Part shown: positions 45,537-58,580 of the stretch, piece after piece
How the letters are laid out: each line of letters starts with the position of its first letter
Position numbering within the stretch: the first letter of the stretch is position 1
Source: Piromyces finnis finn
Lineage: Eukaryota > Fungi > Neocallimastigomycota
Length of the DNA: 64,000 nt
Assembly: GCA_002104945.1 (NCBI GenBank)
Contig: MCFH01000033.1
Span: 124,001-188,000 of the forward strand
Direction of reading: 5' to 3'
Position numbers and translations under genes: made by a program
The notes under the pieces: model-generated
Seen by the model: only the letters and a program-made list of their open reading frames with translations
The model's database searches: none
What the model was told of the DNA's origin: nothing

Positions 45537-48500
45537 TTATGATGAATAGTTATATGAACCTATTGTATACTCAATTTTCTTTTCCATAAGTTCTTTCCAG
45601 CATTCTTTATTCTTTTGAACTCCGTCAAGATAAGGTTGCGCTTTAGGTAAAAATTTAACTAATGCTAAAGCTGCAGGTTCAATAACATTGTTGAAAAATT
45701 CATATTGAACTTTTGGTATTTCTTTTTCAGTGGATGCACGGTCTACTAATGCACTTGTAAATTGTAAACCTAATTCCTTTTCTTTTTTGCCTTGTTCAAA
45801 AGATTCAATTAGCACATCTTCTGCAATTTGTTTAGTGTCTTCAAATGGTTTAATCATTGAACCTAAATCACATGATGTCATAATTATACCATGTAAAAGC
45901 TCTAAATTTCTTTTATTATTTTCTAAATCTAAATCTTCTCCATTCATAAACCTATCTCCTAATTCATTTATATGCTTTAAATTTTTGAAATATATTGATA
46001 AATCTGTTGAAATAATACAACTTTCCATAATATTTAGTGCACGCTTGTAATCTTCTTTTGATAAATTCTTAAATATATTATGATCTGGAAGGGATAAAAT
46101 ATTTATAGTATGATTGAAATGGTGTCTTTCCATTGTTGAATCAGAGGATTCAATTGATAGCATTGTTTTTGCTGATACTTGAAATTGATTATTAGTACCA
46201 CGATGATCAATATCATGACAAATGCAAGAAACTAACATTACAAGAATATCAAATTGATCATTAATTAATTCTTGTAAACCTCCATATTTTAAAAGAAGAT
46301 ATAAAGTATGTGTCACTGCAGATGCATGAGAAAAGTTATGATATTTAACATTAGTTCTATAATTCTTATGAACAGTCATTAAAAATTGAATCAACAATTT
46401 TTCTGGAATTTGGAAAGTTTCTGTAAATTTAAATTCTTGGAATATAGAATATATAGTTAATATTAACTCTTCATTTTGATCTTTTATTTTATGTGTATCA
46501 AATAACCAATTTTGATATACTTCTGGATTAATAATATTACTTTCTGGAGAACTTAAATATTTATTATAAAATATTTCAACATCTTCTGGTAATGTAGTCA
46601 TATGGTAAGCAATCATTTCAACATTAACATCCATTAACATTTTTTGTTTTTGATTCCTTTCTAATAAAATTGCCCTTTCCAAACTTAATGCACAATAAAC
46701 AGCAAAAGATTGAATAACAACTACATCAAAATCACTAAAATCAATAACTTCTCCATCTTCACCAAGTTTATTTACTAATTTTAATACACTAATAACTTTT
46801 TTAGTTGAATTTTGATTTTCCGACATATCTGGAATATAAAAGCCTCCATTATAATTTGAAAAGAAATTACTCTCACTTGAGCCATCAACAATTTGGGATG
46901 ATCTAAATATTGGTACGACCATAACACTCTTTGTTCTGTATTTATTTTCCTTATCGATTGTTCCATTATAATTCTTATCTAAATATGCATCAGCAATATT
47001 TAATAATTCACCAGTTTGAGCAACATAACCAATCAAACCACCGTTATTAATTGAAATATCTTCAAATTTGTTTTCTTCTTTGGAATCAAAATTTACATAT
47101 TTTAAAGTATCATTGTCTTGTACCATATATAAACTTGCTTGGTCAGAACCAACTAATTCTTGCGCTGATACTACTACTTTTCTAAGTAAAGTATAATAAT
47201 CTAATTCACCAAATAATGATTGAAGGATATTAACAAGTTGAATTATAACTGTATGTCTACTAACTTGATCTGTTAATATATTGTTTTTATCTGATATTTC
47301 TTTTATTTTCTCAACTAGTTCTTTTTGAATTTCCCGATAATATAAATTTTCTTTTTTCAATTGAATTAATTTTTGTTCAATTTCATTTTTTAGGATTGAA
47401 GAAGTAATATTATTCTGTGTTTTCTGTATTAGATGTTCAATTGAATCATCCTTCATAATAACTCTCCCTTCATCATTTTTAAATGCTTTATTTACAATAT
47501 TAAGAACTTGTTTTTCACATTTTTCATTACTTTCACATGTTTTTTGTGTTTCTTTCTTAATGCTTTCTATTAAAGAATCTATATTACTATCATCCTTAAC
47601 TTCATTTTCAATTTCTTTCTCAGATAGGATAAATTTCTGATAACGTTCATCAATATCAGTTTTGTATGTATAATATGTTGAATATAAATAATTATTTTGT
47701 ATTATTGAACCCATAATTTTCAAGTATTTTTTAAGCTTTTCATAGTCACCATTAGTAAATTCTTTTACTGATTCATCATCATTTTTAGATAAAGTATTAT
47801 TATCATTATCTATACTATTAATTGAATTGAAAATATCTTTCATATTACTAAAAGAATTTTTACACTCGCTTGATGAACAAGAATTATTGTCGTTTACTGA
47901 AGTATGCTTATTATATAAGCAAATAACTCCTATAACATTATTATTATAACATTTATCATTCATCCATGGAACGAGTTTTCTATCAGCACAACAACTAACA
48001 GGTATACCAATGAAATTTTTAATATTTGTTTCATTGACTGACTCCACATCTCTTAGATTATTGAATGAATATTCACTTTTATATGAAAATCTTTTCTTTA
48101 TAGTTATTTCTGGATCTTTTGAAAATATTTCTTCATCATTTAAATTATCTATTGAGTATCCACTTTTAAATAATGAATTTTTATCATCCTGATAATTACT
48201 GTTACTTTCAAAATTACTAAATAAATTTATGGTACTTATATAACTTTGATTTGTAGCCTCAACTGATCTTGTATTTCCATTAATATCAAGCCATGATCTT
48301 TGATTAATTATATCTGGATTATTTTCAATAATAACTTTATTACGTTGAGCCACCTATAATTATGTTATTAATATTCATTAATATCTCAATGATATAATTT
48401 CAAGTAGTTCCCTTAAAGATAATATAAAATAATAGTTTATTAATATAAAATCCAATATAATATAAAATACCTCACAACAAAAGTATTGTATTTCCGAAAG

Positions 48501-49109: not shown

Positions 49110-50945
49110 TATTCATTCACTTACATGAAATAAAAATATATATGATATAATAATATTGGTTATTTTATTTCTTATACAAGTAAATATAAAATATTAGTAA
49201 TTTTATTAGTTTGAAAAATGTATATAATTGAAATAAGAATTCTTTATTTATGAAATTAGTATTAAAATTATATATAAAATAATATATAATAAATTTTATT
49301 TTTATATAATTTTATTTTTATTATATTTTTATATTTTTCATTCACACTTTATTTTATAATATATTATTATATTCTATTCTTATACATAAATATTTGTATT
49401 AAATTAAATTGAAGTAGATACCAACATTATAAACTTTATATTAAAAAATAAAAATAAAAAGTACGGTCATTAATATGTGCTTAAGCAATTTATAATTATG
49501 ATTATAATTATAAAAATAAACATTTCATATTCTTTAAATATATATATTTTATATTTTATTATTTATTAAAAATAAAACATAAAACTTAGTTACATATTGG
49601 TTGTTAAAATTATCAAAAATTCTTCTTATATATTTAAATAATAAATAGTAAATGATTTAATTATTATTATATATTATAATATTGAAAAGTATCTTTATCA
49701 ATACTTTTTGATATTATAATTAAGAATAAAACAATATTTAGATTAATGTTTACTGTATTGATTATTAAAATAATATTTTTATTTTGTTAGAGCAACATCT
49801 TAACTGTTATTCATTATTATTATGTTAAAACAATTACATAAATATTATTTTTTATATTATCAACCATTTTTTTACATATTAAACAACATTAAATATTCAT
49901 ATAAATAATTATATATAAAACAAAAATGTGTAAAAAGATGAAGTTTATTAATTATATTTTAAATTTTTACCGATTTTAACCCTTCATTTTAATAAATAAA
50001 GCTGTTCTTCGTAGTAAAAAAGAAAGATCATAATTAATATTCAATTTATTGTATTTTTTTAATTAATTTAAATTATATAGAATTTATTATAATTTAAATT
50101 TTTTGATTTAATTTTTAATTAAATTAAAACAATTTTTATTGTTATATTCATCAATTAAAATATTTTTTTTATCTTTTATTATTTTGTATTTTTGAAATAT
50201 CAATAGGAAAAGAAGTATATTTCAAAAATAAATCATTAAAATAAATAAATTAAAGAAAAAAAAAAAAAAAAAGAAAGAAAAAGAAAAGTAAAAAAAAAAA
50301 AGAAAATATAATAAAAAAAGTATAATAAATTAAAATAATATTTATTTTATAGCTTTATAATTAAAATAAATTTTAATAATCATAGATAAAGAAATAAATC
50401 TATAGAATAGTTGTATGTATGTAAAACCTTTTTTTTTTCTAAAATAATAAAAAAAAAAAAAAGTTTATTATTAATAGTTAATTATTTCAACTTAATAATT
50501 GATTATTTTTTAAAAAAGAAAAATAGATGATAATTTAATAAATTGAATATATTTACCATGTTTAAATAAATAGATATATAATTGAAAGTAATTATTGATG
50601 GATAAACAATTAAAAAAAATATACATGTTTATTTATTAACAACAACAACAACAATAATAATAATAAAAAGATATTTATAGATATATATTTTATCATAATA
50701 CAATATAATAATAAATTTAATTTTATTAATTGTATAATATCATTTAATGTAATGTTTTATAATTTTAATTTTTACATGTATTAACTAATATTTTATATAT
50801 TATATACATTCATATTATAATAGAGAATAAGAATTATTTTAATAAAAAGAAAGAAAGAAAGAAAAATATAAATTTAAAAAATATATTTATTTTTTAAGAA
50901 AATTCAGATTTTATTATATAAAAGTAATATAATATTAATAGCAAA

Positions 50946-52477
50946 ATGAAAATTATAAATTCACTTAAATACTTCATACCGTTATTTTCATTATTCTGTT
51001 GGAATGTTTTTGCACTTTCTAAAAAAGAAAAATCAGAAAAAATAGAAGAATTACTAGCTAAATCAAGTGATAATTTTATTAATTTAAATGAAAAGTATTA
51101 TGATTTACTTATAAATACACCAAGAGATTATCATACTATACTTCTTGCTACAGCTACAAATCCACAATTTAAATGTGAACCTTGCCGGTAATTAACATTT
51201 TAAGCAATAATATTTTATTAATAATAAATTAATAATAATGTAACTAATTTTTATTTTATTTTTTTTTTTTGTTTAAAAAAATAGTGAATTATTACCAGAA
51301 TTTCTTAATGTCGCTAATTCCTGGGATCCAAATGACAAAAGAGTATACTTTGCCATTCTTGATTATCAAAATGGTAAAAATGTTTTTAAACAAGTATGCA
51401 TACAAATCTTGTTATCATATATATAAATTTTATAAAAATAAGTTAATTAATATAACTCTTTATTTCAGTTAAAAATTCAAAATGTACCAAATATTCTTCA
51501 CTTCAGACCAAGTGATGGTGTTGTTAAACCAGACTTTTATGACTTACCAAGAAAGTAGGTTTAATTCATTAATTTATTTAATAATATAATTCATTTAATA
51601 CTTAAAAAATAAAATATATAAAATATGATTTATTTATCATTGTAATTATATTTATTATTATTATAGTGGTTTGGGTGCTGAAGAACTTATTCAATTTGTT
51701 ATTAAAAAAACTGGAGTTGAAGTATTTACCCAAGAATTTAAAAAATTAAAATTTTTCTTAATAACACATTGTTAATTAATTTTAAAAATATTTATGTTAA
51801 AATAATTTATTAAACTTAAAAGTTTGAACTTCAAAGACCAACTGATTATACACAATACATTTATTACGGTTTTATAGTTGTTGCTTTAATAATTTCAATT
51901 AAAATAGTTATTCAATATTTCAAGGAAATCATTGTTAATAAAAGAAGCTGGATGATACTCACTGTGGTATGTAAAAAATAAGTATTTTTGTATTTATATT
52001 TTCTATGTTTCGATTAATTCTAATATATATTAATTAATTACATAGAGTATTATATTCTTAATGATTTCTGGATTTATGTGGGTACACATTCGTCATCCAC
52101 CAAACAGTGGTGTATCTCATGGAAATGTTGAATTCTTTATTTCTGGTTTCCAACAACAATATGCTGTCGAAAGTCAAATTATATTAATTATTTGTATCCT
52201 TTTTTATCATATTATTTATGTTGATATACGAAAATTATATTTTAATAATACACAATATTATTATTCCTTAATACTATTATTTTTATTATCATAAATAGAT
52301 ATTTTAATTGCATTTTCATTCTTATATTTATCCGACAAGGTCCAAAAGGTTAAAAATGCACATCTTTTACGTATTACTGTATACGTTGTATTAGCTATAT
52401 TGCTCGTATGTTTCTCCCTCATATTAAGAATTTTCTTTATTAAAAGTCAAGCTTATCCATTCAAATTGTTATTCTAG
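50946..52477 (+). CDS. OST3: Oligosaccharyltransferase OST3/OST6 (MAGT1/TUSC3-family) subunit; multi-exon
   Basis: Signal peptide, PRDYHTILLATATNPQFKCEPC (CxxC), FAILDYQNGKNVF, MISGFMWVHIRHPP, ISGFQQQYAVESQI and C-terminal IKSQAYPFKLLF*. Confidence 0.93.
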
Positions 52478-52834
52478 TTTTTGTAAAACTAAACAACAAA
52501 ACAAAATAAGTATTAGGACTGTATGAAAATGAAATTAATAATAATAACAAAGAAAGAAAAAAGAAATTATTAAAATACAATAAGCATGTATAACAAAATA
52601 TAACAATTAAAAAATAAAATATACTTTTAACAAATTAAAATAAAAAATGCTCATGTTAATAATTAAGAGTTTTATTATTTTATTAAAAAAAAAAAACTAT
52701 AAAAACTTTAATTTTTAAATATATTTTAAATTTTATACTCTTATTTTATTACAAGTATATTATTATAAGCAGTAATGTATATTTATCAATATATTTTGAA
52801 ATTAAATGAGAAAGTAACAATAAATAAAAATTTA

Positions 52835-54358
52835 TCATTTTCTATTTTTTAATCTATTATTATAAAGATTTTGTTTTGGAATATTAATAGAAGAATCTGA
52901 TCGAATATTTAAGGCTTTTTTTGCTAACCTATCTGCTAAATCATTATATTTATTATCTGAATGAGCTTTAACTTTAATGAAATTCACTTTAAGATTTTTC
53001 TTTATTTGGTTATAATAGTTTTTATATTGAATCGTTCCTGGTTTAGTTGCTTTCCATATATTAGTGGCCCAATTTTCTATTCCTATATAATCATAATATA
53101 TATCTATTTCAGGAATTTTATTTTCTATGCAATATGACATTGCTCTTTTTGCACCTTCTATTTCACCAGCAACATTTCTCATTTTTCTCATTTCGGGATC
53201 ATTGAATTTTTTATAGAAATGATGACCTTGATTTTGGTAAAAGATAACAGCACCATATGAATACTCTTTTGTTTTTTTATTAAAACTTCCATCAACATAT
53301 GCTACTGCTTTGCTTTGGTTTCCATTATTTATATTATCATGCATTATTTTTGATTTTATATCTATATTTAATGAATTAGTTGTATTTTCTATAATATCTA
53401 TCTTTTTTTCAAGTTTAGTGCTTGTTGAGTTATCATTACTTTTTTCATCATCGTCGTCTATAATAATAATGTCTAAATCAGCATTTTCTGAAATTTCATT
53501 GACTTTAATATTTGTAGAATTATTGCTAATATTAGTATTTTCTGTAGCATTATTAGTATTTAAATTTTCTGTATTTTCATGTGTATTTATATTTTCTAAA
53601 TTACTAGTAATATTAGTATTTTCTTTAATATTATTAGTATTTGAATTTTCTGTATTTTCATGGGTATTTATATTTTCTGGTATTTCCATGACATTTTCCT
53701 CTCCAGTGTTATTAGAGTTAGCATCAACATCAATAATTTCCATATTTTCTTGTAGATCTTCTGAATTGTCTTTCTCTTTATCATTTCCTTGAAGGAAATC
53801 ACGGGCTTCTTTTAAAGTATAAAAACTTTTATAATATGGGTAACGAAAGCCATATACCTGTTTTTTACATTGTTCCCATGTAGTGAAAATTCCTGTATTA
53901 CGACCTCTTCTTACAGCATAAAATTTTCTATCAAAGGTTGTTTTCTTTTTTTCTTTTATTTTAACACCAGCTTCCATTTTTTCAGATAATTCATTTCCTT
54001 TTACAAAATCTTGAGCCTCTTCTAAAGTCAAGAAACTTTTATAAATTGAACCATTATATCCCATAACATAGTCTTTACATTCATCCCAAGTATCAAATAC
54101 TCCTGTTTTGTAACCTCTTTTTATTGCGTAATATTTTTTTATTGATTTTTTTGGTTTCGTCATATTTTTTTTAACACCATCTTCTAATTTAACGGAAACT
54201 TCCCTTCCATTTAAAAAATCTTCTGCTTCTTTTAATGTCATGAAACCCTTATATACTGAACCTTTATATCCAAGTACATGTCTCTTACATTCTTTCCATG
54301 ATTTAAATATACCTGTAGTATATCCTTTTTTTATTGCATAAAATTTCTTTACAACCAT
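52835..54358 (-). CDS. Intronless ribonuclease HI with three tandem N-terminal hybrid-binding (Cauli_VI/viroplasmin) domains and a bacterial-type catalytic domain
   Basis: HBDs start at aa 4, 74 and 144 (FYAIKKGYTTGIFKSWKEC, YYAIKRGYKTGVFDTWDEC, FYAVRRGRNTGIFTTWEQC). The catalytic D-E-D-D set is in YVDGS, RNVAGEIEG, YYDY and VKAHSDNKYNDLADRLAK. Confidence 0.95.
   Translation of the reverse strand: MVVKKFYAIKKGYTTGIFKSWKECKRHVLGYKGSVYKGFMTLKEAEDFLNGREVSVKLEDGVKKNMTKPKKSIKKYYAIKRGYKTGVFDTWDECKDYVMGYNGSIYKSFLTLEEAQDFVKGNELSEKMEAGVKIKEKKKTTFDRKFYAVRRGRNTGIFTTWEQCKKQVYGFRYPYYKSFYTLKEARDFLQGNDKEKDNSEDLQENMEIIDVDANSNNTGEENVMEIPENINTHENTENSNTNNIKENTNITSNLENINTHENTENLNTNNATENTNISNNSTNIKVNEISENADLDIIIIDDDDEKSNDNSTSTKLEKKIDIIENTTNSLNIDIKSKIMHDNINNGNQSKAVAYVDGSFNKKTKEYSYGAVIFYQNQGHHFYKKFNDPEMRKMRNVAGEIEGAKRAMSYCIENKIPEIDIYYDYIGIENWATNIWKATKPGTIQYKNYYNQIKKNLKVNFIKVKAHSDNKYNDLADRLAKKALNIRSDSSINIPKQNLYNNRLKNRK
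53527..53678 (-). repeat. In-frame 81-bp tandem duplication in the RNase H linker (ENINTHENTENxNTNNxxENTNIxxN x2)
   Basis: Two related copies at about 53527-53597 and 53608-53678. Confidence 0.9.
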
Positions 54359-55565
54359 TAATTTTATTTTTGAGAAACTCTTAGAGTATATAATAATTAA
54401 TTGTTATATGATAAAAGTTAAAAAAAAAAAATATCATTTTTGAATAATGTACAATAATCACGTATACAAATTTTTGAATTTATGTATTTTGTAGTATATA
54501 ATAATATAAGTATGAAAATTGTTTCACAAATAAGAACCAATAAAGCATATATTCAAAATAATTTTTTTTGTATTTTTCATAAACGTTTTATTAATGACTG
54601 TTTATTAAATGTTTGTTATAATGTATACAAACTTAAGATAATTTAAAATTAATAAGGATTTTTATTTATGTTTCACAACTAAAAAAAAAGTTTTAAAAAT
54701 GTTTTCATAAATAATATTAAAAGTAATTTTTAAAAACTATATATAAAATTATAAAAATAAAAGATAATGACAGAATAAAGAGAAAAAAAAAAAAAATTAT
54801 ATTCTACTTTAATCTACACCTCAAATTTATATATAGAGATAAAAAAGAATATAAGAAAAAAATAATAGTAAAAACTAAAGAATTTAATTTTCATTTTAAG
54901 GAAATTTATAAACATATTAAATATTAAACTATTAATTATAGATTTTTGTTTAAAAGTTATAAAATTTAAATATATTTTCTCAATATATCATTCAATAAAA
55001 ATAAATAACAATTGTATATAAATTTTATTTTTGTCATTATGATATTTTAAAAAAAATAAAATTTTAAATTTTTTTTAAAAAAACATAAAATAATTATATA
55101 ATGGAGGGGGTTAATTTATGTTCCCTTGAAGTTTATTATATCATTTAAAATAATAATAAAATTTATAAAAATAGGAATTTTTTTTTTTTTTTAAAATCAA
55201 TAAAATTTTATAATATTATTATTCGGAATTTAATGTTCATTTGTCAAATTTTCTTATTATGAATCCAAATACATTAAATTAATATAATATATATAGGCAA
55301 TTTTCTTAATTTTTGAAAGAATAGATACAAAGAAATACTGTTAAGAATTATAATCTTTAATTTTTTTTTTATTTGTAAAATTTTTAAATTTATTTCCAAT
55401 TCTATTATTTCAATCAGCAATAATTTAATCATTTGGTCTTGATAATTCATCTATAAAAATTATAAATTTTTATTAAAATTTATATTAATTCAAATTCGCA
55501 AATAAAACAAAGGAAATAATCAGAAGTATTTTATAACTTTAAATTGAGTTATTGTTATATAAAAA

Positions 55566-57245
55566 ATGGATTATTTTAATTCAGTAATTTCAAAATTTGT
55601 AATAACAAATAGGATTGGTTTTCCACCAAAGGATGAAATAAATGCATTTCAGTATTTATCTGATACTAAACAATCAAAACTCTGGAAATATACAAAACCA
55701 ACTAAAAACAAATGGATTGTTAAAGAAGATAATTCATATAGTCTTTTTAAAAAGACAGAAAAAGATAAATCAATTGATGAATATGAAGTTATAAAAGTAT
55801 TAGGTGTTGGTGCACATGGTGATGTTAAATTAGCTAAAAAAAAGAATGATGCTAAAAAGGTAAATTAAATCAAATATAATGGAATAAATATTTGTGTTTT
55901 AAAAGAATAAATTAGTAAAATTAAAATGCATATAAAATATTTATATAAATCTAAATAATACGAAAATATTTATTAACAATTAATTCATTAATCTATATTA
56001 CACTATTATCAATTAAAAATTTAATTACAAATATTTTATAACACGATAGAAACAATTTGCTATAAAAACAATTAATAAAGATAAAATATTGCCAGAATTG
56101 TTAATTGGTAATCAAAATAGACAAATTCCATTAGAAATTCATATTCTTGATTTTTTAAGTAGACATTTAGATCCATCGGGTGTAATTGTAGAAATGACTG
56201 ATTATTTCGAAGATGATGATAATTTCTACGTAGTAATGAAATATTTTGACAATGGAATAGGAATGGATTTGTTTGATTTTGTAAGCTTAAAATATTTAAT
56301 TATTAATAATATTTACTAAAATCTAACAATAATTTTAATAATTCAATATTTTTGCTATTATTATTAACATTTCATTAATTTTTTAAAAAAAAATTAAATA
56401 AATAAAAAAGATTGATAACCAAGTTGAATGGATTGAAGAAAGTCGTATAAAAAAAATATTTAAACAATTATGTCAAGGTATATCTCATTTACATTCGCTT
56501 GGTATTGTTCATCGTGATATAAAAGATGAAAATGTTATTATGGATGAAACTTGTACAAAAATCCAATTAGTGGATTTCGGTTCTAGTGGTTATTATAGAC
56601 CGGGTCTTCTTGATGATAAATTTTTTGGAACTGAAGGATATGCTGTAATTATCTATTATAAAAAAGACTTAAAAAATAATTCTTCAATATTAAAATTTAA
56701 CTAATAATATATATATATTTAGGCACCAGAAAGTAATAAAAAAATTTAAGAGAATAATACTAAAATAGAATCAAATAAACTAATATTTTTAATATATAAC
56801 CTATTAATCATACTCTTTCACTTTTTAAGTTGTTAATGGTGAAAAATACTCGGGTCCAGAACAAGGTATAATAAAAATAAGAAAAGATTTTTATAAAAAT
56901 TTACTATTTTATTAAATATTTCAATTATCTAAATTTAAATATATTCAAAATGTAAGATATATGGTCATTAGGTGTACTCTTATATACATTGATTTACCAA
57001 GAAAATCCATATTTACAAGAAGATTTTTATTCGAAACCATTACAAATACCTTTCATATTATCAGAAGGTAAAAGTTAAATTATCCAATTACTTTGAATAA
57101 TAGAACTATGGGATTAAGTATTCATAATTTTTTTATTACTATACTATTAGGTTCTTTAGACTTATTGCGCTGGATGTTAAATAAGGAGCCAAGTTGTAGA
57201 CCAACTATTAATGAAATATTAAATCATCCTTGGCTTAAAGATTAA
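55566..57245 (+). CDS. Ser/Thr protein kinase with a PAS-kinase (PASK/Psk)-type catalytic domain and no PAS region; multi-exon
   Basis: LGVGAHGDV, FAIK, IPLEIHIL, GMDLFDF, HRDIKDEN, DFGS, GTEGYA|APE|IVNGEKYSGPEQ|DIWSLGVLLYTLIYQENPY and ILNHPWLKD*. Confidence 0.9.
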
Positions 57246-57582
57246 GCCTCCATAAAAATTTAAAAAGAACGCTATTTTTGAAATTTTTATATACAAGCAC
57301 AAACTTATCGCATATTTTAATTCAACATATTTAATTTATATATGTTTTTAATTAAAAATAAATTATCTTTAAAAAGATTTGTATAATACATAAATAAAAC
57401 TTTTTTTTAAGCTGTGATGAAATAAAAGTACTATACTTTTTTCTAAATTTCTTCTGTAATTATATAAATATTTTTAAATAGATTAAAGATTTTTAAAATT
57501 ACAATTAATAAAAATAATAATAGAAAATTATATATATTATTTAATTATTTTTTCTGATAATTAAAAATTAATTTTCAAATAC

Positions 57583-57647
57583 ATTCTTTATATTTGAATA
57601 TTGTATTTCTTCATGATACAGAAATACAATATTCAAATATAAAGAAT
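57583..57647. repeat. Perfect 28-bp inverted repeat with a 9-nt spacer (hairpin/cruciform)
   Basis: attctttatatttgaatattgtatttct (57583-57610), tcatgatac, then agaaatacaatattcaaatataaagaat (57620-57647), which is the exact reverse complement. Confidence 0.95.
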
Positions 57648-58191
57648 ATCTCATAAATAATATTTTTAAACTTTTAAGTTTTTTTTTTTTTTAACATTTT
57701 CTTGTAGAACTCTTTACATATTTGGATTGAACGATATTTAATGAATTAATGAAATAGAAAGAGTTAAAAGGCATAAACTACATTATATTTAAAATAAATT
57801 TGTATTCTTTATAATATTTTTGAATTTAAAATTTTCAACAATTTAATTGAGGCTTAGATCATCACATGTTTGATCTATGAAAATAAAATTTTTTTTGTTA
57901 CATTTCCATTTACATTAATATATTATATGATGATGAAAATAGTAAGTATGGGGCTTTTATATATTATATCATATAAAAAAAAAAAATTTAATATTTAATA
58001 AATGTAATTTATGTGGCACATTATTTATATTTACCAAGTACAAAATTTAATTTTTTCTTCATTCAATTCGTCAATATTATTAATACATAATGTAAAAAGA
58101 ATAATTTATACTTTATATATAAAGAAGAAAAAAGAATAATTTTTTTTTTAATCATTTTTTTATATATATAAAATAAATAAATAAATATATA

Positions 58192-58580
58192 ATGGCTAGA
58201 GGAAAGCAGAAGGAACAATCTAGGTAATTATTTAAATAAATTTTAAATTTATATCAAAAAATGAGTTTTAATATTTAAATAATTATTTTTAATAATATAG
58301 AGAAAAGGCTCAAAAGGCTGCTGCTGCTAGAAAGGGTGGAAAGTCACAAATCCAATTCAGACAACAAGGACTTCAAAGTATTTGCCCAATTTGCAAGGTA
58401 TTAATATATTATTTATGAATTTATATTTATAATTAAAAATATTATAAAAATGCTAATATTAATTTTCCTAAAATATTAAATATGTATTATTAGACTCCAA
58501 ATCCAAACTACAAAACTATGGTTTTACATATGGAAGCCAAACATCCAGGAAAACCAATTCCACCAGAATCTACTGCTTAA
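58192..58580 (+). CDS. ZNF706: Small 4F5/SERF-C2H2 zinc-finger protein (ZNF706-like); 3 exons (58192-58223, 58301-58397, 58494-58580)
   Basis: Spliced product MARGKQKEQSREKAQKAAAARKGGKSQIQFRQQGLQSICPICKTPNPNYKTMVLHMEAKHPGKPIPPESTA*. It has the MARG-Q N-terminus and a CxxC...HxxxKHP finger. Not in the ORF track. Confidence 0.9.

Follow-up and report, generated by a model that had tools for sequence, protein, structure and literature searches.

What is an intronless ribonuclease (RNase) H gene of bacterial appearance doing in the nuclear genome of a gut fungus, and where did it come from? The question is raised by a 64,000-nucleotide stretch of Piromyces finnis contig MCFH01000033.1 (hereafter the window), the minus strand of which encodes at 52835-54358 a protein with three RNA/DNA-hybrid-binding domains (HBDs), an Asn/Glu-rich spacer and an RNase H domain. 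The initial annotation had described an intronless gene here, and a single unbroken open reading frame (ORF) of 507 amino acids plus stop was found to fill exactly this interval. Taken as a whole, the data are best explained by a clostridial xenolog whose HBDs multiplied after the transfer and which likely serves as the RNase H1 of the organism, an explanation that we consider very probable.

The catalytic domain comprises residues 347-490 (52889-53320, minus strand) and was assigned to type-1 RNase H by profiles, alignment and model. The region 52910-53311 scored 50.5 bits for PF00075 in a six-frame scan (cut-off 25.8), an RNase H-like domain at residues 355-482 was recognized by hmmscan as RVT_3 (24.3 bits, cut-off 21.6), and the NCBIfam RNase HI models span residues 351-485. 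The residues Asp356, Glu399, Asp423 and Asp476, encoded at 53291-53293, 53162-53164, 53090-53092 and 52931-52933, respectively, occupy columns invariant over 30 relatives and align with the catalytic residues of human, Chlorobium and 2kq2 RNase H. The AlphaFold 2 model of the domain, folded with the alignment of its relatives, revealed a type-1 RNase H fold at a predicted local distance difference test (pLDDT) score of 93.3. Foldseek matched this model with a probability of 1.00 to many RNase HI structures, the best TM-scores of 0.77-0.82 being those of the compact enzymes of S. tokodaii, Halobacterium and M. tuberculosis (Rv2228c-N). Together with a ratio of nonsynonymous to synonymous substitution rates (dN/dS) of 0.14 against the ortholog P0002, the invariant DEDD columns and the model confirm that the catalytic domain is intact, as had been annotated. 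By sequence and model the protein is a type-1 RNase H, with a predicted competent active site and predicted enzymatic activity.

The catalytic domain closely resembles that of bacterial proteins. It is 60-69% identical to that of single-HBD proteins of about 200 residues named Clostridiales, Oscillospiraceae, Hominilimicola or Sporosarcina, a subfamily that NCBI calls "ribonuclease H family protein" or "viroplasmin family protein". When a single genome of each prokaryotic species was scanned with patterns, the family was present in at least 578 of them; almost all carriers belong to Bacillota (Lachnospiraceae, other Clostridia, Oscillospiraceae and Bacillales), and many are rumen or gut metagenome-assembled genomes (MAGs). 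In both trees of the catalytic domain the window protein fell into one clade, with a Shimodaira-Hasegawa-like approximate likelihood ratio test (SH-aLRT) support of 95 in a quick tree of 144 rows and a support of 100/98 in a careful tree of 52 rows, and in both trees the whole clade is nested among Clostridia. It contains a fungal group A, consisting of the window protein, P0002, the Neocallimastix protein P0003 and P0005 (support 99/92), a group B of P0004, P0007 and P0021, which are AT-rich and fungus-like with flanks of 7-12% GC, and six single-HBD sequences on low-GC bacterial contigs. In the approximately unbiased (AU) test, descent of groups A and B from a single origin was not rejected (p 0.41), and either one or two transfers would be possible. 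Similar to the Clostridia HBD-RNase H proteins (solved representative 2kq2/2kw4, "Ribonuclease H-related protein"), the window protein carries their motifs, the DEDD residues and an N-terminal PF01693 domain. However, the clostridial proteins typically have one HBD and a linker of 10-15 residues, whereas the window protein has three HBDs, Lys-rich linkers and an Asn/Glu-rich spacer of about 155 residues and is encoded by a eukaryotic nuclear gene. Every sampled member of the bacterial family contains at least one HBD, except for sequences that are themselves fragments. The bacterial origin of the gene is well supported by these sequence comparisons.

The N-terminal part of the protein is a tandem array. 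Pfam matched PF01693 in three stretches of the whole protein (overall E 4.3e-56), each HBD reached 70-72 bits in the six-frame scan, and a purpose-built hidden Markov model (HMM) located the HBDs at residues 4-50 (54209-54349), 74-120 (53999-54139) and 144-190 (53789-53929). The three complete HBDs and their exact 70-residue period, noted in the initial annotation, are thereby confirmed. The HBD1 and HBD2 units share 54% amino acid and 70% DNA identity over 70 residues, and Tandem Repeats Finder (TRF) reported a 210-bp period at 53955-54351 with 1.9 copies and 76% matches. HBD3, with a G-F-R-Y-P variant loop, is the most diverged (37-40% amino acid identity), and by its sequence would be an older or a faster-evolving copy. 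Linker 1 (residues 51-73, 54140-54208; 7 Lys/Arg of 23) and linker 2 (residues 121-143, 53930-53998; 6 Lys/Arg of 23) are both Lys-rich and have 8 of 13 post-HBD residues in common, so the annotated kinship of the linkers holds as well. The 210-bp repeat and the HBD tree described below bear out the proposed intragenic tandem duplication.

The HBDs are homologous to characterized domains, with matches to the yeast HBD 1qhk (E 6e-11) and the human HBD 3bsu (E 2e-8). The F/Y-Y-A, x-W and aromatic-Y-K-x-F positions are kept in all three copies when aligned with the human domain; they include the presumed hybrid-contact positions, which we take to be the equivalents of human Y29, W43, F58 and K59. 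The AlphaFold 2 model of the full-length protein was poor (mean pLDDT 46) and was used for the pattern of order and disorder only. It displayed a β-β-α-β-α succession three times, at a pLDDT of just 50-68 and from a shallow alignment, as well as a visible RNase H domain and unstructured low-confidence linkers at residues 53-74, 122-145 and 192-347; linker 1 has a pLDDT below 50 and no secondary structure. The spacer (residues 191-346, 53321-53788) is a low-complexity segment predicted to be disordered (pLDDT about 24), with 40 Asn and 20 Glu in the 160-residue stretch 191-350. Its annotated 27-residue duplication was recovered both by alignment and by TRF (81-bp period, 85% matches): residues 228-254 and 255-281 (53516-53677) are identical at 21 of 27 amino acids and 71 of 81 nucleotides.

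Comparison with P0002 gave dN/dS values of 0.25 for HBD1 (77% identity), 0.14 for HBD2 (74% identity) and 0.29 for HBD3, compared with the 0.14 of the catalytic domain, which indicates at the sequence level that all three HBDs and the catalytic domain are under purifying selection. The spacer evolves fast (41% identity, dN/dS 0.62) and appears relaxed. Linker 2 is conserved like the folded domains (83% identity, dN/dS 0.19), whereas linker 1 has only 55% identity. The conservation of linker 2 hints at a specific role, which might be a nuclear localisation signal (NLS) or a nucleic-acid contact.

Which other enzyme could provide the RNase H1 function? Six-frame scans of the whole assembly (56,455,805 bases in 232 contigs; the GC content of the window is 19.5%) with PF01693, PF00075 and the NCBIfam RNase HI model NF001236 matched only the window gene, so that neither a second HBD or RNase HI gene nor a canonical RNH1 was found. 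The same scan detected the catalytic subunit of RNase H2 on another contig, as an 81-residue match to profile positions 70-150 of 199 in an open frame of 97 amino acids; this gene was found as a split exon, and intron-split genes are therefore detectable by such a scan. These results suggest that the canonical RNH1 was lost and replaced by the bacterial xenolog. With RNase H2 present and no other RNase HI detected, the role of RNase H1 in the organism most likely falls to this gene, which would have displaced the eukaryotic enzyme. HBD1 starts at residue 4, and the reading frame is closed by a stop 15 codons before the ATG; therefore the protein has no presequence, as annotated. The hydrogenosomes of the organism are not known to have a genome, which the lack of a presequence would fit.

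The alternative that survives best is that the protein is mainly a non-housekeeping factor, acting in defence against retroelements or viruses or as a hybrid sensor with secondary cleavage, while another, undetected enzyme would provide the RNase H1 function. It draws on bacterial relatives: many Bacillota proteins of 470-585 residues among P0009-P0081 fuse the HBD and RNase H module to RnlA-toxin DBD and RNase LS-like HEPN domains. Their RNase H domains are 55-66% identical to the catalytic domain of the window protein; examples are P0020 (Clostridium botulinum), P0077 (C. perfringens) and P0042 (Sporosarcina, L018). The E. coli RnlA-RnlB system is reported to depend on RNase HI (PMC5308261). 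The fusion looks like a "Rosetta stone" of functionally interacting partners. However, the gene in Piromyces occurs once, has kept its position in a second fungus and shows purifying selection as well as an intact catalytic site, the scans found no other RNase HI candidate in the assembly, and no defence-type partner genes lie nearby in the window. We therefore regard a mainly non-housekeeping role as improbable, and a function as the RNase H1 of the organism remains the preferred reading.

The HBD number varies among the relatives of the window protein. Among 236 fetched sequences, 218 have one HBD, eight have two, three have three, two have five and one has six. Three HBDs are found in the window protein, in P0002, which is its syntenic ortholog, and in P0005; five occur in the Neocallimastix orthologs, among them those of N. 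californiae (ORY22547.1, UniRef A0A1Y2AJZ2) and N. lanati (KAG4096652.1), and several bacterial relatives have two. Named orthologs come from N. californiae, N. lanati and N. sp. "constans". The gut-fungal orthologs ORY22547.1, KAG4096652.1, P0002 and P0005 resemble the window protein in the catalytic domain (66-84% identity), the Asn-rich spacers, the multiple HBDs and their common clade, but differ in HBD number, three in the window protein, P0002 and P0005 and five in Neocallimastix, some of the duplications being lineage-specific. In the HBD tree, HBD1, HBD2 and HBD3 of the window protein pair with HBD1, HBD2 and HBD3 of P0002, respectively (SH-aLRT 96 for HBD3). This position-by-position pairing indicates that the triplication is older than the split from the sister species. 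HBD1-3 of Neocallimastix group together in the same tree. Later HBD duplications thus appear, from these sequences, to be lineage-specific, the arrays having expanded independently in different lineages. The triplication had been interpreted as a remodelling of the transferred gene; it is not singular to this gene, as the array predates the sister split, and larger arrays occur both in Neocallimastix and outside the gut fungi. According to the initial annotation, three-HBD proteins being common in bacteria or fungi would speak against its interpretation, and this objection applies in part: the gut-fungal members have three to five HBDs, and a few bacterial or metagenomic proteins have several.

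Two of the latter deserve attention with regard to the donor. P0008 (L006:6001-7467) has five HBDs and is encoded on a 32.5-kb phage-like contig together with NrdD, dUTPase, guanylate kinase, thymidylate synthase and an SPP1-type holin, and the metagenomic P0006 (L008:1089-2645) has six. Similar to the window protein, both place a tandem HBD array before one RNase H domain and belong to the same broad family. A phage or mobile element carrying a multi-HBD RNase H might hence have been the immediate donor, with the array imported ready-made, and one of the nearest bacterial sisters even adjoins a group II intron reverse transcriptase. But P0008 and P0006 lie in a distant catalytic clade (38-39% identity), have short linkers and no low-complexity spacer, and their HBDs cluster among themselves, whereas the grouping of the Neocallimastix HBDs 1-3 points to duplication after the transfer. 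In addition, the nearest sisters have a single HBD and are embedded among chromosomal genes such as UvrA and a hydrogenase, on dense same-strand contigs that also encode ankyrin-repeat proteins and the reverse transcriptase; the UvrA encoded beside one sister shares 77% sequence identity with its homologue in a Clostridiales MAG and about 70% with the UvrA proteins of Acetivibrio, Petroclostridium and Ruminiclostridium. A ready-made array from a phage is accordingly a little less probable still than the non-housekeeping role, and we prefer a chromosomal clostridial source with later duplication. The contigs L092 and L094/L095 (P0124, P0138) have 27-29% GC, are clostridial and are rich in long ankyrin-repeat proteins; on one of them the sister gene lies directly upstream of the reverse transcriptase gene.

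Vertical inheritance of a diverged fungal RNase H1, with the clostridial likeness due to convergence or a long-branch artefact, would account for the layout of the protein. Similar to canonical RNase H1 (human RNASEH1, 2qk9, 3bsu and 6vrd; S. cerevisiae, 1qhk), the window protein arranges HBDs, a flexible connection and a type-1 RNase H domain in this order, and its HBDs match those of yeast and human. Yeast Rnh1 has more than one HBD. The catalytic domain tells otherwise. When ranked against all solved structures, it scored 62.5 bits with 2kq2 (E 4e-16), 29.3 with Chlorobium RNase H, 15.8 with human RNase H1 and about 14 with E. coli RNase HI. Around the catalytic Glu it reads RNVAGEI as in 2kq2, in contrast to TNQRAEI in human, and the motifs MRNVAGEI, YDYxGI and KVKxHS are common to the window protein and the bacterial family. 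The window protein further differs from the canonical enzymes by having three HBDs and no mitochondrial presequence. These features, the 60-69% identity to clostridial proteins and the strongly supported, short-branched nesting within bacteria make vertical descent very unlikely. The annotated Clostridia/Lachnospiraceae type of the catalytic domain, as opposed to a eukaryotic RNase H1, is thus supported by identity, structure ranking, motifs and the 100/98 clade. Catalytic-domain phylogeny had been proposed as a check; in trees of bacterial and fungus-like members of the family, it placed the domain among Clostridia.

The gene occurs as a single copy within a contig of 594 kb, where it is flanked by an OST3/OST6 gene on one side and a protein-kinase gene on the other. 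The neighbours had been described as intron-dense, which is right for these two, both split into exons, but not for the GAF-PDE gene at 45537-48353 (minus strand), a single-exon ORF of 938 amino acids with a GAF domain and a 3'5'-cyclic nucleotide phosphodiesterase domain (PDEase_I, E 1e-66). P0002 lies on a 10.8-kb metagenomic contig colinear with 50735-58235 of the window at 74-80% nucleotide identity, where the order OST3/6 - RNase H - kinase is the same; the two RNase H proteins are 61% identical by BLASTP and 66% by codon alignment. The GC content at third codon positions (GC3) is 13.8% in the gene, close to the 13.1% of the GAF-PDE gene and below the 20-24% of the nearest bacterial homologues, and the flanks have 13-18% GC. 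Four public runs from three studies contain 60-74% of the sampled words. Two contigs from the runs, X1 of 1603 nt (52770-54372) and X2 of 1521 nt (52878-54398), are colinear with the window without joints and end just beyond the ORF, 14-40 nt upstream of the ATG. Their union, 52770-54398, is of transcript size; they are unstranded, and the minus strand is assumed from the ORF. This pattern is as expected for an unspliced mRNA and is consistent with expression. At 53804, X1 has A in one contig at a depth of 12.6, while the window has G, as do the remaining three runs; a different strain or allele is the probable cause. Contamination by bacterial DNA or a chimeric assembly, which an intronless, bacterial-like gene and the abundance of Clostridia in gut samples might bring to mind, can be set aside as hardly conceivable in view of the single copy between fungal genes, the identical gene order in a second fungus, the native GC3 and AT-rich flanks, an Asn-rich spacer typical for gut fungi and colinear contigs from three independent studies. 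Synteny, GC3 and the colinear contigs agree that the gene truly belongs to the fungal genome, is ameliorated and apparently expressed, and the chimera that the initial annotation had considered is not borne out.

Some points weigh against a clostridial xenolog that multiplied its HBDs in the fungus and took over as RNase H1. The trees were built without eukaryotic RNase H1, and that family was excluded by the score ranking and the motifs only. The whole-protein hmmscan returned RVT_3 and not PF00075, although the six-frame scan gave PF00075 its 50.5 bits on the same region. With only 47 columns, the HBD tree resolves poorly, so that arrival with one or with several HBDs is not decided by it. 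The absence of RNH1 comes from exon-by-exon six-frame scans of one assembly, which could miss a gene that is unassembled or broken up by many introns. Finally, the assignment of the public runs to RNA is a guess, and DNA assemblies could also break in the very AT-rich flanks, just where a transcript would end.

With these points weighed, we still favour the clostridial xenolog and propose the following history. The catalytic domain, probably together with the first HBD, would have been transferred from a bacterium of the class Clostridia before the sampled gut-fungus lineages diverged. After the transfer, the gene would have acquired the base composition of the fungus and gained the disordered Asn/Glu-rich spacer, and tandem duplication within the gene would have raised its HBD number to three in the lineage of the window gene and five in Neocallimastix. 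In characterized HBD-containing RNase H1 enzymes, the HBD binds the RNA/DNA hybrid, tethers the catalytic domain and raises affinity and processivity. By analogy, the three HBDs on their flexible Lys-rich linkers might each bind an RNA/DNA hybrid and thereby confer avidity and processivity. The spacer of about 155 residues may then let the DEDD two-metal domain reach the neighbouring hybrid and cleave its RNA strand, in R-loops as well as in primer hybrids. The structural matches of the model to compact RNase HI enzymes are consistent with a heavy reliance on the HBDs for substrate binding. Multivalent binding and a nuclear location are both inferred from the architecture. The roles suggested in the initial annotation, in sensing R-loops for an AT-rich genome or in controlling retroelements, and its NLS-like reading of the linkers are speculation.

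A wider proposal is put forward tentatively, as a possibility we are inclined to doubt. The gut fungi might have lost canonical RNase H1 throughout the lineage and might rely on the clostridial xenolog, with HBDs repeatedly expanded to three to five, in parallel to independent expansions to five in P0008 and six in P0006. The HBD number would then be an evolvable setting of hybrid avidity and processivity, perhaps favoured in extremely AT-rich genomes, in which RNA/DNA hybrids would be weak.

Horizontal gene transfer (HGT) into gut fungi is common and already known, as is a multi-HBD RNase H1 in yeast. Our literature search found no description of this gene, and its orthologs have been deposited as "hypothetical protein" or "Ribonuclease H". 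In the main text and part of the supplements of two surveys of HGT in gut fungi and early fungi (10.1101/487215, PMC11291939), RNase H, PF01693 and Cauli_VI are not mentioned; the silence of these portions is weak evidence that the gene is unreported. If confirmed, the displacement would mean that a bacterial xenolog took the place of RNase H1, a core eukaryotic enzyme of genome maintenance, throughout a fungal lineage, and that HGT into gut fungi reaches past metabolism and carbohydrate-active enzymes. The natural series of one, two, three, five and six HBDs on related catalytic domains suits tests of valency against affinity and processivity, and multi-HBD modules could be R-loop probes of higher avidity than the current single-HBD tools.

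A few minor features complete the description of the locus and family. The catalytic domain is followed by a short basic C-terminal tail (residues 491-507, 52838-52888, minus strand), which is poorly conserved. An antisense ORF at 53310-53792 (plus strand; 160 amino acids, rich in Phe, Ser and Leu) was rejected as a gene, being the reverse complement of the Asn/Glu-rich spacer. According to precomputed Pfam assignments, other members of the family (P0097, P0102, P0110, P0115, P0075 and P0120) combine the HBD and RNase HI domains with RNase HII (PF01351), a flavodoxin-like reductase (PF02525/PF03358) or thioredoxin-like domains. P0004 and P0367 (L099:218-1741 and L102:878-2401), on AT-rich fungus-like contigs with flanks of 7-12% GC, each have an ORF of 507 amino acids made of two full HBD and RNase H units, which represents either a tandem duplicate that has fused or a read-through of two genes.

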